From the IMG/VR virus record IMGVR_UViG_3300038465_000091, positions 124,001-188,000 of that record: a stretch of DNA of 64,000 nucleotides. The stretch is one strand, 5' to 3'. Numbering within the stretch: the stretch's first letter is position 1; each line of letters opens with the position of its first letter. Positions 3,100-64,000 of this stretch are shown here, piece by piece. Position numbers and translations under genes: made by a program. The notes under the pieces are model-generated. The model was not told where the DNA came from and searched no databases. It saw nothing but the letters and a program-made list of their open reading frames with translations.

Positions 3100-3540
3100 A
3101 TGCGTAAGATCGATGAAGGCAACATCACGGGTCTCTAGGTTTCACAGCAGCAACCAGCGTACTTCTTCCTTTTCGTCCGTCAAGACATCTCCCTAGCACA
3201 GCAATTAGTCCAAAGCAACCACGCCACGTTTGAAATGGCGAAGCGTTTGCCGTCCGATTACGATCAAACCCCAAATCTCATCCTTGTCGGCGTGCCCGAT
3301 AAGTCAGCTTTATTCCGTGTTATCAACAAGTTAAATGACAATGCCATCGGCCATGAAGTGTTCTATGAGCCCGATGACAACCTCGGGTTGACCGCAGTCG
3401 CGACCTACCCGCTCACGCAGGAGCAGCGTCGTGCGCTTTCCAACTATCGGTTGTGGAAGTCCGACGTTGCCCCTGCACCACAAACCATCGTGCCGCAATT
3501 CAAAGAACAATTCAAGGAGGCATCAGCCTGTGAAATCTAA
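3100..3540 (+). CDS. Peptidyl-tRNA hydrolase (Pth2-like) with an in-frame amber (TAG) at codon 13
   Basis: RBS + ATG 3100: MRKIDEGNITGL-TAG(3136-3138)-VSQQQPAYFFLFVRQDISLAQQLVQSNHATFEMAKRL... in frame with track ORF 3235..3540. The FVRQD...Q..HA, LILVGVPD and TAVA segments match the PTH2 fold pattern. Confidence 0.75.
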
Positions 3541-4180: not shown

Positions 4181-4270
4181 GGGCGATAAAAGGCGTCGAG
4201 ATCGTGCTTGCTGGATTGCTACGGCGAGCGTGATTGAAGTGCTGGGTGCTGAAAGGTGCCACGCCCACCA
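4181..4270 (+). ncRNA. CCA-ended tRNA-like RNA A (90 nt; acceptor-like stem, long hairpin, GAAA-capped stem)
   Basis: GGGCG/CGCCC-A-CCA ends; internal hairpin ATCGTGCTTGCT...GGCGAGCGTGAT; 3' half homologous to RNA B (5158-5207). Confidence 0.55.
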
Positions 4271-4271
4271 T

Positions 4272-4353
4272 ACGCGGGTAGCTCAGGTGGAGTTTCAGAG
4301 CGTCGGGACGCAAGTCTCGAAGGTCGGTGGTTCGAGTCCGCCCCCGCGTACCA
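4272..4353 (+). tRNA. tRNA-like RNA T1 whose anticodon loop is replaced by a GCAA tetraloop
   Basis: Acceptor ACGCGGG/CCCGCGT-A-CCA, D stem GCTC/GAGC, T arm GGTGG-TTCGAGT-CCGCC; anticodon arm TCGGGAC-GCAA-GTCTCGA. Confidence 0.8.
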
Positions 4354-4394: not shown

Positions 4395-5033
4395 ATGACA
4401 AGAAATTTACTGATTACTGCACCGCCGTTCAAAGTGGAAGCATCAATGAAACAACTGGGTTCCAACTTACGTACAGCACGAATTCGACGCGAACTGACGA
4501 TAAAGCAGGTCGCTGAAAGTATAGGGACAGGACCACGCGCCGTCATGGATGCCGAAAAAGGAAAATCCACCACGGGATTAGTTGTTTACACCGCACTTCT
4601 TTGGAAGTATCTACTATTGGATAAAATGCACGAATTAGCCGATCCCCTTCGAGATGAAATCGGGCTTATCTGTGCCTCTAAGCGGGAACCAAAGCGTGCA
4701 ACACGTGCACGTGGAGTTGAAGAGGTGGGTGTCCCGAGCGTGTATTTTATAGGCGACACAAAGCGAGGCATTGTTAAAATTGGAAAATCCAATAAGCCCG
4801 TCAACCGTTTTGAAAGTCTTCAAGCGGCCAATGCGGGGCCGTTGCAACTATTGGCTGAGCTACCCTTTGAAACGGATCATGCCGCTTGGACCGCCGAAAG
4901 CGAACTGCACGCCAAATACAAATACCTCAATACCCACGGTGAGTGGTTTCGATTGGATTCGAGCCTGAACGAGGAAATTCTGGGTATTCGAGCGCGGAGT
5001 TTAAGGAGAGCAGATTTTGTAAGGCCCGAGTAG
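4395..5033 (+). CDS. XRE-type HTH fused to a T5orf172/MUG113-like GIY-YIG nuclease domain
   Basis: N-terminal LRTARIRRELTIKQVAESIG HTH; C-terminal VYFIG...VKIGKS..P..R...LQ......LQLL...E..LH......HGEWF. Its TAG stop lies inside T2. Confidence 0.75.
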   Translation: MTRNLLITAPPFKVEASMKQLGSNLRTARIRRELTIKQVAESIGTGPRAVMDAEKGKSTTGLVVYTALLWKYLLLDKMHELADPLRDEIGLICASKREPKRATRARGVEEVGVPSVYFIGDTKRGIVKIGKSNKPVNRFESLQAANAGPLQLLAELPFETDHAAWTAESELHAKYKYLNTHGEWFRLDSSLNEEILGIRARSLRRADFVRPE

Positions 5034-5114
5034 CTCAGTGTTAGAGCGCCTGTGCAACGCCCGCAAGGGCTACGCCACAGGAGGTCGGTGGTTCGATTCC
5101 ATCCTCGGGTACCA
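5024..5114 (+). tRNA. tRNA-like RNA T2 with a 21-nt hairpin-containing insert in place of the anticodon loop
   Basis: Acceptor GCCCGAG/CTCGGGT-A-CCA with normal D and T arms; stem CCTGTG/CACAGG encloses CAAC-GCCC-GCAA-GGGC-TACGC. Confidence 0.8.
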
Positions 5115-5157: not shown

Positions 5158-5207
5158 GGGCGGTAGAGCAGCGCAAGCTGGGTGCCGCAAGGCATCACCG
5201 CCCACCA
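5158..5207 (+). ncRNA. 50-nt CCA-ended tRNA minihelix-like RNA B
   Basis: Perfect 7-bp GGGCGGT/ACCGCCC + ACCA; GGTGCC-GCAA-GGCATC stem at the T-arm position; small GC-GCAA-GC hairpin. Confidence 0.65.
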
Positions 5208-5212
5208 AGTTT

Positions 5213-5361
5213 GGGGAGTTCGCTAGGCGAAAACTTAGTAGGTGATATCGCCGAACGGTCAGTAACCGATAGGTGTGAGGCCAGCGGCGTAGTCGCCTTT
5301 AGCGAGGCTTGGCTGAAAAGCGACGAGACTGCGAGGGGTTCGAATCCTCTACTCCCCACCA
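5213..5361 (+). ncRNA. 149-nt tRNA-like RNA C with an expanded central domain
   Basis: Acceptor GGGGAGT/ACTCCCC-A-CCA; T arm AGGGG-TTCGAAT-CCTCT; internal stems CGGT/ACCG and GTCGC/GCGAC; no 7-nt anticodon loop found. Confidence 0.7.
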
Positions 5362-5384: not shown

Positions 5385-5460
5385 GCGCCCGTAGCTTAGC
5401 GGTTAAAAGCAGTCGTCTCTAAAACGATGATCGTCGGTTCGAATCCGACTGGGCGCACCA
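5385..5460 (+). tRNA. Amber suppressor tRNA (anticodon CTA)
   Basis: Canonical 76-nt cloverleaf: GCGCCCG/TGGGCGC-A-CCA; anticodon arm GTCGT-CT-CTA-AA-ACGAT (CTA at 5419-5421); T arm GTCGG-TTCGAAT-CCGAC. Confidence 0.85.
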
Positions 5461-5463
5461 AAT

Positions 5464-5543
5464 GGGCGAGTAGCTCAGTGAAAGAGCGGCTTCCGTTCTA
5501 GAACGGAAGAGGGTCGGTGGTTTAAGTCCATCCTCGCCCACCA
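5464..5543 (+). tRNA. tRNA-like RNA T3 with an extended palindromic anticodon arm
   Basis: Acceptor GGGCGAG/CTCGCCC-A-CCA; the anticodon arm is the perfect 20-nt palindrome CTTCCGTTCTAGAACGGAAG; T loop TTTAAGT. Confidence 0.75.
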
Positions 5544-5622: not shown

Positions 5623-6201
5623 ATGAAAATCCTAAGCTGTGCCCAAGGCTGTCTTAATGGCCTCGACAGACTTGCTCTCGCCTTTGGCTATCTAGCCGAA
5701 CCACCAACCAACAACTCAATTCAAAGCCAGACTGTTTATGAAGTTCATCGCCTCTCCTGTGATGAGTGTGATTCAATTGAACGTAACGTGGGGGGCAACT
5801 GTGAACGCTGCGAAGAAGGTAAAATCCTTGTTCGTCAAGCAGATAACTCGGCTAAGAAAGATCGAGTCAAATATCCGCACTCCGACGAACCTTCAGTGCG
5901 CGGCGAAGTCTGTCAATACGTACTTTTCAATCCGCAAGATTTCTACTACTATCTGTACAACTATGGCAAAGGCTTCTTAAATCATTTTGATCGGGAGACT
6001 CAACAAAAACTTGTTCGTCGGGGCGTCGTCGGATACTTGTGGGGAGCGACCGTGCTGCTGGATCGTGGTGTTCCTCGGGGGTACATCTGCCTCTCACCGG
6101 ACATCCGCGAGAAAGCCCTAACCTCGAAGCAGTCGATCCTGATTGACGGCGGCTTCATAGAACTGAAAAGCATGAAATATACGCTTGAAGATTATGCCTA
6201 A
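5623..6201 (+). CDS. Cys-rich N-terminus fused to a fragment paralogous to the major capsid protein
   Basis: LFNPQD...FDRETQQKLVRRGVVGYLWGATVLLDRGVPRGYICLSPD aligns by eye with FFNPRD...IDRETQRKLLKTGVMGYLWGATLLQSRKVGYGCIYILAD in 46489..47448. Confidence 0.8.
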   Translation: MKILSCAQGCLNGLDRLALAFGYLAEPPTNNSIQSQTVYEVHRLSCDECDSIERNVGGNCERCEEGKILVRQADNSAKKDRVKYPHSDEPSVRGEVCQYVLFNPQDFYYYLYNYGKGFLNHFDRETQQKLVRRGVVGYLWGATVLLDRGVPRGYICLSPDIREKALTSKQSILIDGGFIELKSMKYTLEDYA

Positions 6202-8050: not shown

Positions 8051-8124
8051 GGACCCGTCTTCCAATGGCAGGATCGGCGACCGATTATCGCTCAATGGTG
8101 GTTCGAATCCATCTGGGTCTACCA
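8051..8124 (+). tRNA. Atypical tRNA-Ile(GAT) (C33, U37)
   Basis: GGACCCG/TGGGTCT-A-CCA; anticodon arm GGCGA-CC-GAT-TA-TCGCT; T loop TTCGAAT. Confidence 0.65.
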
Positions 8125-8368: not shown

Positions 8369-8450
8369 GCTAGCGTGGCACAGTGGCGACTGCAATGGTT
8401 CCGTAAACCATCATACAACACCGGGGGTTCGAGTCCCTTCGCTAGCTCCA
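8369..8450 (+). tRNA. trnT: tRNA-Thr(CGT), with C33 and an enlarged variable loop
   Basis: GCTAGCG/CGCTAGC-T-CCA; ATGGT-TC-CGT-AA-ACCAT. Confidence 0.8.
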
Positions 8451-8895: not shown

Positions 8896-8980
8896 GCTAC
8901 TGTGGCTCAGCGGCGACAGCACCGCACCTGTAATGCGGCGGGGAAACCCCACGGGAGTTCGAGTCTCCCCGGTAGCTCCA
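8896..8980 (+). tRNA. trnT: tRNA-Thr(TGT), with C33 and a GGGG-AAA-CCCC variable arm
   Basis: GCTACTG/CGGTAGC-T-CCA; CCGCA-CC-TGT-AA-TGCGG. Confidence 0.8.
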
Positions 8981-19122: not shown

Positions 19123-19916
19123 TGAGCAAGCGTAAGAGCAAGCAGGCGGTTAGCCGCCCCATGGTGTTGACGGGTGCCACGAATAAGGGGATGCGGAGCT
19201 ATCAGGAAGACCGACATCTGATGATCTCCGCTGAAGAAGGCTTGATTATGGTCGTCATGGATGGTCATGGCGATGCGGGCTGTGCTCTCCTCTTAGAGAA
19301 GAAATTCTGCGAGGTTTGGGACTCTGTTTTCTCCCCCGAGAAGAGCCCCGACATTCTCTTCAAGGAACTCTTCGATAAGTTCGATATGCTCACTTCATTC
19401 ATGGGCTGCGGGTCCACCATGAGTGTCGCCTTCATCCCGAAAGCTAACACAGGGAAAGAGACTAAAGTTCATGTCGCCATCCTCGGCGACTCCCCGGTGA
19501 TCGTGCAGCAACCAGATGGGACATTCCATGTCAGCCCCGAACATAACGTCCGCACCAACATGGCGGAACGTGCAGCGGCTCAGGCACGCGGCGGCTACTA
19601 CTCCTCGAACGGCTATATTTGCTACGGCCCAGAAGGGCATGGGTTGCAGATGAGTCGAGCTTTCGGCGACCGCGATCTGGGAAAAATCCTTTCCCGCATT
19701 CCCGAGGTCTACACGGTTGAATTGGGTGACTGGGTTCTGGTGGGATCGGACGGACTTCTATCCCCCGGCCACGATGAATCGGGAGTGCAGATGCTTCTTG
19801 ACATCGTGAAGATGATCGAGGAGCAGGATGTCAACGCCGAGGAACTCGTTGATTACGCTGCTAACGTGGTAAAAACAGGGGACAACGTAACGGCGATTTT
19901 GTGGAGGAGATCATGA
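19122..19916 (+). CDS. PP2C-family Ser/Thr protein phosphatase
   Basis: QEDR, MDGHG, GST, GDS, SRAFGD, SDGL and GDNVT motifs in the canonical order. Confidence 0.9.
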   Translation: MSKRKSKQAVSRPMVLTGATNKGMRSYQEDRHLMISAEEGLIMVVMDGHGDAGCALLLEKKFCEVWDSVFSPEKSPDILFKELFDKFDMLTSFMGCGSTMSVAFIPKANTGKETKVHVAILGDSPVIVQQPDGTFHVSPEHNVRTNMAERAAAQARGGYYSSNGYICYGPEGHGLQMSRAFGDRDLGKILSRIPEVYTVELGDWVLVGSDGLLSPGHDESGVQMLLDIVKMIEEQDVNAEELVDYAANVVKTGDNVTAILWRRS

Positions 19917-20137
19917 GTAAGATTGTAAAACGCGAAATGTTCGATGAGGATATGGACAATATAGTTTTGGAGTGTGGTCATGGTCTCATTGCCCACACAA
20001 TCCCGAACCCAATGGTAATTGCCGCAGGATTTCCAGATGCTTCCGTTCCAAAGGATGCTATCGAAATTTCATGTCCCGTCTGTGAATGCAACCCCAGCGA
20101 GCTTTATAACCCTCATCCAGTCCTTAAATGCAGTTAA
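19913..20137 (+). CDS. Small Zn-ribbon hypothetical protein
   Basis: GGAGGAG RBS; LECGH...CPVC. Confidence 0.6.
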   Translation: MSKIVKREMFDEDMDNIVLECGHGLIAHTIPNPMVIAAGFPDASVPKDAIEISCPVCECNPSELYNPHPVLKCS

Positions 20138-63662: not shown

Positions 63663-64000
63663 ATGACCTCCAAGAAAAACGCTAAGTCGTCTCCCGCGCC
63701 ATCTGAACCGCTTCCCACCCCGACTAGTCCCGCACCTGTGGCGGTCGAAGAAAAGCTCGGGCTTCCGCACAGAATCATCAAGTTCATTGCCGCCGCATTC
63801 TCCGAAAAGGGGGAGCCTAGCAGCGCCCGCATTCTTAGTGGTTGGTTGAGTGTGTCCAGTATGGCGTTGATTTGGTTTATGGTGCGGCACATTTTCTACA
63901 CCGATAACCCAGAAAAGCTCATAACGTGGGTTGGCGGGATGCCAGCGATTATCTATGCTCTGGCGGCGTTTGCCATTAGCCCGTTTGGTCTGGCGAAGAT
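63663..64000 (+). CDS. Holin-like membrane protein, 3'-truncated
   Basis: MTSKK...AFSEKGEPSSARILSGWLSVSSMALIWF...GMPAIIYALAAFAISPFG; two TM segments; the frame is open to the window end. Confidence 0.5.
   Translation, partial: MTSKKNAKSSPAPSEPLPTPTSPAPVAVEEKLGLPHRIIKFIAAAFSEKGEPSSARILSGWLSVSSMALIWFMVRHIFYTDNPEKLITWVGGMPAIIYALAAFAISPFGLAK

Follow-up and report, generated by a model that had tools for sequence, protein, structure and literature searches.

Among the non-decoding RNAs with the shape of a transfer RNA (tRNA) that occur in phages, T4 RNA C and D form the sole long-known example, and they are still without a function. T4 RNA C (species 1 RNA, gene rnaC; AF158101, 70908-71046) is 139 nucleotides (nt) long, carries GGUUCGAAUCC near its 3′ end together with a long and a second hairpin, has no anticodon, and is located after tRNA-Arg and segB, a GIY-YIG homing-endonuclease gene. 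Its role was unexplained in the literature as late as 2022 (PMC3014915, PMC9697503). Here, we describe a 149-nt element of a peat-soil jumbo phage, at positions 5213-5361 (plus strand) of a 64,000-nt window, the window being the whole stretch of DNA that was analysed (bases 124001-188000 of an IMG/VR virus record of 223.5 kb). The element is a genuine RNA gene of tRNA descent, and we propose, with a probability of roughly 0.45, that its product is a processed, stable tRNA mimic that does not decode and that descends from a tRNA of the tyrosine type (class II-like). We favour this reading because the tRNA-like frame is beyond chance, the fold is stable, no detector calls the element at default settings, the acceptor is that of tRNA-Tyr and the surrounding island is rich in mimics. 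While tRNA islands of phages are usually annotated by the calls of tRNA finders, this locus adds conserved non-decoding tRNA-shaped RNAs, one sibling of the element showing clear covariation. Expanded genes with the same Tyr-type acceptor are also present in unrelated phages of 70-400 kb.

By analogy, we regard T4 RNA C as the closest known counterpart of the element. Both are found in a phage tRNA cluster, after a tRNA-Arg or tRNA-Arg-like gene and near a GIY-YIG/T5orf172-type gene (here at 4395-5033), and both are RNAs of about 140 nt with a canonical T arm near the 3′ end, two hairpins before the T arm and no anticodon loop. T4 RNA C differs by having no encoded CCA and a weak terminal stem, whereas the element possesses a perfect Tyr-type acceptor stem and an extra hairpin in the D position. 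The likeness is one of kind and not of a shared family, since the model R1, run on T4 rnaC with filters off, gave 4.5 bits and E = 1.3, that is, no detectable homology. More distant parallels are the gammaherpesvirus-68 tRNA-like RNAs, mascRNA and the bacterial YrlA/Y RNAs, which are tRNA-shaped, processed by tRNA enzymes and non-decoding. Unlike the element, the first two are eukaryotic and YrlA/Y RNA is permuted and Ro-bound, and there is no sequence relation. The candidate assignment as a Y RNA was rejected, there being no TROVE/Ro gene (PF05731) in the record and the termini of the element forming an acceptor stem.

The 5′ GGGGAGU and 3′ ACUCCCC-A-CCA ends of the element form seven pairs, all Watson-Crick, and the T arm AGGGG-UUCGAAU-CCUCU directly abuts this stem, as in a tRNA. 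A reading made beforehand from the sequence alone (hereafter the sequence-only reading) had described these ends as tmRNA-like termini (GGGG...TTCGAAT...CCACCA) without a G3-U70 pair, tmRNA being transfer-messenger RNA. Both observations were borne out, G3 pairing with C70. A strict descriptor that asked for a TTCRA T loop, a T stem of 5 bp, an acceptor of 7 bp directly abutting it and NCCA returned 27 matches on the 223-kb record, 26 of them tRNA-sized and one long, the 149-mer, and it returned none in 30 shuffled genomes. The tRNA-like frame of the element is real. The whole 149-mer has a minimum free energy (MFE) of -60 kcal/mol (z = -3.26), and the MFE and centroid structures concur in a cloverleaf-like layout made of the following parts.

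5213-5219, plus strand: 5′ strand of the acceptor stem, GGGGAGU (nt 1-7), with 7 of 7 pairs made with 5351-5357 at pair probabilities of 0.78-1.0.
5222-5239, plus strand: hairpin in the D position, GCUAGG-CGAAAA-CUUAGU (nt 10-27), predicted in the MFE structure with a pair probability of about 0.57.
5240-5298, plus strand: 59-nt rod in the place of the anticodon arm (nt 28-86), predicted in the MFE and centroid structures with pair probabilities of 0.71-0.93.
5308-5327, plus strand: GAAA-capped hairpin (nt 96-115) where a class-II tRNA has its variable arm, predicted in the MFE structure with pair probabilities of 0.54-0.62.
5334-5350, plus strand: T arm, AGGGG-UUCGAAU-CCUCU (nt 122-138), seen in the sequence, the MFE structure and the descriptor scan.
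5351-5361, plus strand: 3′ strand of the acceptor stem, ACUCCCC (paired nt 139-145), followed by the discriminator A (A73) and the encoded CCA, seen in the sequence.

The D-position hairpin has the size of a D arm and a CGAAAA loop, without G18G19. Its sole GG would take the first loop positions if the stem were shortened to 4 bp, and ARAGORN indeed depicts it as a 4-bp D stem following the in-silico deletion described below. The rod is composed of helices of 7, 5, 4 and 3 bp with internal loops of 2x2, 3x2 and 4x4 and a GAUA (GNRA) tetraloop as cap, and a linker of 9 nt separates it from the GAAA-capped hairpin. A 7-nt anticodon loop is displayed neither in the MFE and centroid structures nor in the low-energy suboptimal folds inspected, all of which show the rod. 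Of the features of a decoding tRNA, the acceptor, a UUCRANY-type T loop, the discriminator and CCA are there, and a displayed anticodon loop, G18G19 and a detector call are missing. Neither ARAGORN nor Rfam at gathering thresholds made a tRNA or tmRNA call on the element, and ARAGORN in intron mode at default was silent as well. An Infernal-type check against tmRNA and tRNA models, which the sequence-only reading had proposed, also gave no tRNA or tmRNA call with Rfam, even at E ≤ 10.

The 149-mer has four neighbours of similar kind in the island:

4181-4270, plus strand: CCA-ended minihelix directly before TL2, with an MFE of -38.3 kcal/mol (z = -2.65).
4272-4353, plus strand: TL2, a cloverleaf with a 7-bp arm and a GCAA tetraloop replacing the anticodon loop, found in four phages with 6 compensatory pairs.
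5024-5114, plus strand: TL3, tRNA-shaped, with a GCAA-capped extended hairpin as anticodon arm, labelled 'tRNA-Arg' by ARAGORN.
5158-5207, plus strand: 50-nt minihelix, 5 nt upstream of the 149-mer, with an MFE of -28.6 kcal/mol (z = -3.75).

The orthologues of TL2 in related phages (L099 9055-9136, L102 9043-9124, L101 8552-8627) all keep the GCAA, which is invariant in the four phages, and ARAGORN either leaves TL2 uncalled or gives it a '4-base anticodon gcaa'. In TL3, the inner stem GCCC/GGGC becomes GGCC/GGCC in L099, a compensatory change, and the anticodon that ARAGORN assigns disagrees among the orthologues. Neither TL2 nor TL3 could be rescued into a decoding tRNA. The 50-nt minihelix lacks a T loop and is built from an acceptor stem of 7 bp, a pair of hairpins that each carry a GCAA cap, and ACCA. 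Together with the 149-mer it is conserved as one block, and its single change in L099, GCAA to GUAA, preserves the GNRA motif. The 3′ half of the minihelix at 4181-4270 is paralogous to it. TL2, TL3 and the minihelices make conserved non-decoding tRNA-shaped RNAs a feature of the island and not a peculiarity of the 149-mer. The CCA-ended minihelices may be by-products of leaders or small mimics of the acceptor end.

Further CCA-ended minihelices were seen in relatives (L102 9006-9042; L002 at about 5833-5897). The type consists of an acceptor-like stem and GNRA-capped hairpins without a T loop. In the window and in L102, the minihelices lie 1-5 nt upstream of a tRNA-like gene, and that of L002 comes after its 149-mer.

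Judged by their sequence, the acceptor stem and discriminator of the element are those of bacterial tRNA-Tyr(GUA). This identity was obtained from a metagenome scan that used the element's 3′ 23-mer as query, a poor choice that matched ordinary bacterial tRNA-Tyr and tRNA-Val genes: among the matches listed, 97 of the 120 loci bearing TTCGAATCCNNNACTCCCCACCA were tRNA-Tyr(GUA) and 6 of the 120 were tRNA-Val, and none was a new homologue. An IMG/VR scan for the same acceptor and T loop around an oversized interior gave at least 12 more genes, on unrelated phage contigs of 7-407 kb. These expanded Tyr-acceptor genes span 115-145 nt (L242 698-840, minus strand; L243 126-258; L244 4236-4366; L245 5196-5337; and L246-L253), and those checked lie mostly within tRNA arrays (L242-L244). 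Default ARAGORN and Rfam called none of the four genes of L242-L245 as a full-length tRNA. In a 119-nt family (L246, L248, L251-L253), the anticodon arm is extended, the inner stems covary and the apical loop AUACUAGUUAC is conserved. The gene of L244, from an unrelated 205-kb phage, possesses an A-rich hairpin in the D position, an extra arm of about 58 nt and, in its MFE structure, an intact Tyr anticodon arm, with which the GAAA-capped hairpin (nt 96-115) of the 149-mer aligns at 12 of 14 positions.

The element shares with class-II tRNA-Tyr and with Tyr-derived nonsense suppressors an identical acceptor, A73, a long variable-position arm and a latent UUA arm. It differs from class-II tRNA-Tyr in that no 7-nt anticodon loop is displayed, G18G19 is absent, 51-59 extra nt are present and the detectors are silent. 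The latent arm overlaps the base of the rod:

5292-5308, plus strand: latent anticodon arm (nt 80-96) with loop CUUUAGC and UUA at 5299-5301, found by ARAGORN after in-silico deletion.

This arm is the basis of the main rival explanation, in which the element is either the precursor of a class-II Tyr-type tRNA(UUA) or a form of it with an extra arm. This tRNA would be an ochre suppressor that works beside amber suppressors. The insert of about 51 nt (nt 29-79), which follows the D arm and precedes the anticodon stem, would either be excised or be tolerated. Tyr-type ochre suppressors exist, E. coli supC being one. Indeed, in-silico removal of nt 29-79 produces a 98-nt class-II tRNA that ARAGORN calls at default with the anticodon UUA, in a loop CUUUAGC with U33 and G37, and the same nt 80-96 arm was chosen in 226 variants of the deletion scan. 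The sequence-only reading had itself allowed for an ordinary tRNA with a removable insert. The deletion product agrees with that case, but the scan is permissive, many different anticodons being obtained from other expanded elements. The stem of the latent arm, GUCGC/GAGGC, is made of G-C, U.G, C-G, a G.A mismatch and C-G, and this mismatch speaks against a decoding arm. Moreover, the 5′ strand of the arm is locked in the basal 7-bp helix of the rod, and at least 11.6 kcal/mol are needed to force the arm within the 149-mer.

The Tyr-type acceptor and A73 also suit an interrupted suppressor, as do the two CUA tRNAs within 25-100 nt downstream and the L244 gene, which shares the acceptor, the A-rich D-position hairpin and the insert site and whose Tyr arm is AAUGC-CUGUAAA-GCGUU. 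The element further resembles intron-containing tRNAs (group I introns of bacteria and phages; bulge-helix-bulge introns of archaea) in that a tRNA frame is interrupted and the extra sequence pairs with nucleotides of the anticodon arm. It departs from them in the place of the 51-nt insert, which is 5′ of the anticodon stem and not in the loop. None of the known splicing routes suits this insert. Group I introns are far longer than 51 nt. No bulge-helix-bulge was read from the fold, no Rfam intron model matched, and RtcB was not found in the record. Moreover, the siblings TL2 and TL3 are beyond rescue as decoding tRNAs, and TAA is the commonest stop among the long open reading frames (ORFs) of the genome (119 of 262). 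Altogether, we consider an interrupted suppressor to be rather unlikely.

Other relatives contain long tRNA-framed RNAs with unrelated cores, at L106 9181-9297 (117 nt), L102 9680-9815 (136 nt) and L107 9067-9221 (155 nt). Such RNAs would follow from a generic frame with variable cargo, in which the tRNA frame provides only processing and stability to a functional rod with conserved internal loops and a GNRA cap, for instance a protein-binding site or a regulatory RNA. Engineered tRNA scaffolds work by this frame-plus-cargo principle, and within the predicted fold no part is more stable than the rod. However, TL2 is free of cargo (7 bp and GCAA), and in that RNA it must be the frame that counts. 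Neither a partner protein nor a target was identified for the rod, no Rfam family fits it, and its likeness to helix 8 of the signal recognition particle (SRP) RNA is topological and seen by eye. We therefore hold a scaffold to be unlikely for the 149-mer, for which a mimic remains our preferred reading.

The 136-nt RNA of L102 has canonical D and T arms and, in the place of the anticodon arm, a three-way junction with two loops containing UCUAGA/ACUAGA. ARAGORN finds no CUA tRNA within the 16 kb of this locus that were examined.

Two further assignments of the rod were tried and rejected. Its resemblance to SRP helix 8 or to the sarcin-ricin motif was by eye only and had no Rfam support. At the rod apex, window 5260-5280 is identical over 21 nt to the molybdenum cofactor (Moco) aptamers of two Chloroflexi metagenome-assembled genomes (L233 1006-1026, L234 4108-4128). 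About 0.5 chance matches of this kind are expected, and the identity is probably a coincidence. The Moco riboswitch (RF01055) was rejected, no model match being found on the element and the flanks being unrelated.

The sequence-only reading had proposed a minimal ribosome-rescue RNA. In this explanation, a charged tRNA-like domain would have a short tag frame, VRPAA*, translated in trans. The element does resemble tmRNA (ssrA, including the permuted two-piece form) as a phage-encoded acceptor, T arm and CCA enclosing non-tRNA sequence, in a region that holds a real tmRNA and an ORF with a predicted Pth2 fold. A tag ORF had been said to be absent. In fact, a frame of five codons before its stop, GUG AGG CCA GCG GCG UAG (5275-5292), exists and ends in Ala-Ala, and the variant G65A is synonymous in it. 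The earlier statement does not strictly hold, although the frame is called only at ARAGORN -ps85 and is base-paired within the rod. In tmRNA mode, ARAGORN was silent on the element at default and at -ps90, while 20 of the 21 genome calls at -ps85 were spurious and -ps80 gave 106. The suggested GCCAG/UUGGC pseudoknot (5280-5284 with 5309-5313) fell on energy: both 5-mers are present, their pair probability is 0.00, compared with 0.84-0.93 in the helices of the rod, and GCCAG is used in helix c of the far more stable rod.

The element differs from tmRNA by its G3-C70 pair, which abolishes the identity element of alanyl-tRNA synthetase, by its length of 149 nt and by the lack of supported pseudoknots, of a supported resume/tag module and of a model match. 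tmRNAs are longer than 300 nt. A genuine permuted tmRNA is encoded by the phage 6 kb upstream of the element (record 123104-123446, ARAGORN) and is supported by Rfam RF04321 (69.7 bits against a threshold of 47 bits), and no SmpB gene (PF01668) was matched in the record. A minimal tmRNA was rejected on the G3-C70 pair, the lack of a default model call and this genuine tmRNA, and we judge it very improbable.

Exact-pattern scans of IMG/VR with four parts of the element returned just an identical copy (L003) and one variant (L002/L099). The variant differs by G65A, in the 4x4 internal loop, and by C82U, which turns a G-C pair into G.U. The rod fold is kept, and C82U also leaves the stem of the latent nt 80-96 arm paired, which also favours an interrupted suppressor. 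Searches with R1 over 18 related phage records, 10 syntenic loci, T4 and Tunturi_5 found ordinary tRNAs only, and blastn of the element against INPHARED gave no match. In four peat/soil read runs, the fragments of the element were all identical, with no variants.

Between the phage of the window and that of L099, the 149-mer is 98.7% identical and the 50-nt minihelix 98% (49/50). For the same pair of phages, identity is 90% for TL3, 83% for TL2, 86% for the Pth2-like ORF, 76% for the tmRNA, 77% for tRNA-Ile and 61-66% for the CUA tRNAs. Only three substitutions separate the two lineages in the block of minihelix and 149-mer, each neutral for structure (GCAA to GUAA, G65A, G-C to G.U). This high identity may reflect a strong constraint or, equally, a recent transfer, the latter being possible because genes of the homing-endonuclease type flank the block in both phages.

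A recent transfer would also fit a decaying or hitch-hiking remnant, in which a tRNA-Tyr-like gene broken by an insertion spread with homing-endonuclease genes and has no function. The element is confined to two phage lineages, the block is 98-99% identical against 61-90% for the flanks, and T5orf172 and HNH genes adjoin it. A functionless remnant is nevertheless difficult to reconcile with an intact acceptor, T arm and CCA, with a fold at z = -3.26, with three substitutions that all spare the structure and with neighbouring mimics that are conserved with covariation. We find it quite improbable.

Several observations weigh against the element being a non-decoding mimic. It contains a latent anticodon arm that is close to canonical (loop CUUUAGC), and nothing in the phage record points to a decoy target. 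With two sequence variants only, covariation lends no support to the rod or to the other core helices. The identity of 98.7%, against 61-90% for the neighbours, may stem from recent transfer beside the homing-endonuclease genes. Furthermore, the element is absent from relatives that keep the synteny and whose marker, the Pth2-fold ORF, is 53-74% identical, which makes it dispensable for the clade. Finally, no RNA run is among the sequencing runs that hold the locus.

The element retains the parts that processing enzymes read, namely the 7-bp acceptor, the canonical T arm, A73 and the encoded CCA. If it is a mimic, the following course of events can be proposed. It would be transcribed together with its neighbours, RNase P would cut the 5′ end, and the 3′ end would be trimmed to CCA like that of a tRNA. 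The processed RNA would then act via proteins or RNAs that sense the shape of a tRNA and not by reading codons. Defences that target tRNAs and phage counter-measures to them are documented (PMC10264068, PMC11555353, PMC13056530). In view of these defences and of the context, the likeliest role would be to serve as a decoy or sponge when phage and host compete over tRNAs. Candidate targets would be defence enzymes that cut or modify tRNAs, a synthetase or another enzyme of the acceptor end. The decoy that the sequence-only reading had put beside its rescue RNA is compatible with a mimic without anticodon loop that stands among other mimics, with a gene of predicted Pth2 fold nearby.

A broader proposal is that the element, its siblings and the minihelices together form an RNA counter-defence, in which uncleavable mimics, here with the acceptor end of tRNA-Tyr, flood the cell and soak up a host enzyme that reads either the overall form of a tRNA or its acceptor end. 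Examples would be a nuclease directed against tRNA-Tyr, like that of retron PtuAB, or a toxin that modifies acceptor ends. We offer this proposal as a rather unlikely one. If true, it would give T4 RNA C a plausible job. Either outcome, decoys against immunity directed at tRNAs or an interrupted suppressor of a new kind, would open a chapter that can be tested in the struggle of phage and host over tRNAs. A recently transferred remnant would be of modest interest. Experiments are within reach, with Tunturi_5 as a cultured relative and with surrogate expression.

The sequence-only reading had linked the element to a neighbouring Pth. The Pfam families Pth (PF01195) and PTH2 (PF01981) have no match in the phage record, and what stands of the claim is a gene with a Pth2 fold:

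3139-3540, plus strand: Pth2-fold ORF of 133 amino acids, 1.7 kb upstream of the element, identified with AlphaFold2 and Foldseek.

According to its AlphaFold2 model (pLDDT 72, with residues 11-100 above 80), this ORF folds as peptidyl-tRNA hydrolase 2. The top 12 PDB matches of Foldseek all have the Pth2 fold (probability 1.0, TM 0.56-0.69). Four of them are titled peptidyl-tRNA hydrolase or Bit1, and the remainder are structural-genomics entries, which we take to belong to the Pth2 family. No other protein of the neighbourhood is as well conserved as the product of this ORF. All relatives keep the ORF in synteny with the tmRNA and the tRNA island, and the order of tmRNA, Pth2-fold ORF, tRNA-likes and CUA tRNAs is retained in relatives. 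Homologues with 34-42% identity are found in many cultured jumbo phages, mostly as 'hypothetical', one being annotated as a peptidyl-tRNA hydrolase. In Acinetobacter phage ME3, the homologue adjoins a CUA tRNA, a T5orf172 gene and a CCA-adding enzyme.

The phage record has an estimated completeness of 71%, a G+C content of 53% and 36 tRNA genes called by ARAGORN, one with a 4-base anticodon. The same DNA recurs across many peat and permafrost metagenomes. By its helicase (49% amino acid identity), the nearest cultured relative is Tunturiibacter phage Tunturi_5 (309 kb), and since we take the host of the latter to be an acidobacterium, a host among the Acidobacteriota is a reasonable guess. No protein family match to a CCA-adding enzyme or to tyrosyl-tRNA synthetase was found in the record.

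On the plus strand, the island runs from the minihelix at 4181 through TL2, the T5orf172/MUG113 gene (4395-5033), TL3, the second minihelix and the 149-mer to two CUA tRNAs (5385-5460 and 5464-5543). The tail of the 149-mer, ACCA followed by AGUUU/AUUUU, is repeated after the adjoining tRNA-like genes. The last members of this series are:

5385-5543, plus strand: pair of amber-suppressor-type tRNAs with the anticodon CUA, supported by ARAGORN and Rfam, the second having an 8-nt loop, UUCUAGAA.

L099, L101 and L107 all keep such a pair, and L108 and L109 each have one CUA tRNA or more. Across relatives, one or two CUA tRNAs adjoin the Pth2-fold ORF, including in Acinetobacter phage ME3 (L241 8483-8556). 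There is no sign that the phage recodes TAG, which closes 58 of the 262 long ORFs and for which read-through gains are the same as for TAA. Downstream of the CUA tRNAs, sequence reading reveals Ile, Thr and Gln tRNAs interspersed with small zinc-finger-like and HNH-like ORFs. Pfam support for HNH in the island region is a single weak match.

The T5orf172/MUG113 (GIY-YIG-like) gene sits where L002 and L102 have a tRNA-Lys(UUU) and a tRNA-like RNA about 128 nt long, and at its stop it overlaps TL3 over the initial 10 nt. It looks like a homing-endonuclease replacement.

Further along the island, the tRNA-Thr genes at 8369-8450 (CGU) and 8896-8980 (UGU) have C for U at position 33 and enlarged variable regions, and a 'tRNA-Ile GAU' at window 8051-8124, with loop CCGAUUA, scores under the Rfam tRNA threshold. 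Outside the window, other structured, uncalled sequences with CCA ends or T arms are present at genome positions 19355-19491, 20027-20116 and 63776-63902, all on the minus strand, where they adjoin the other two tRNA clusters of the phage.

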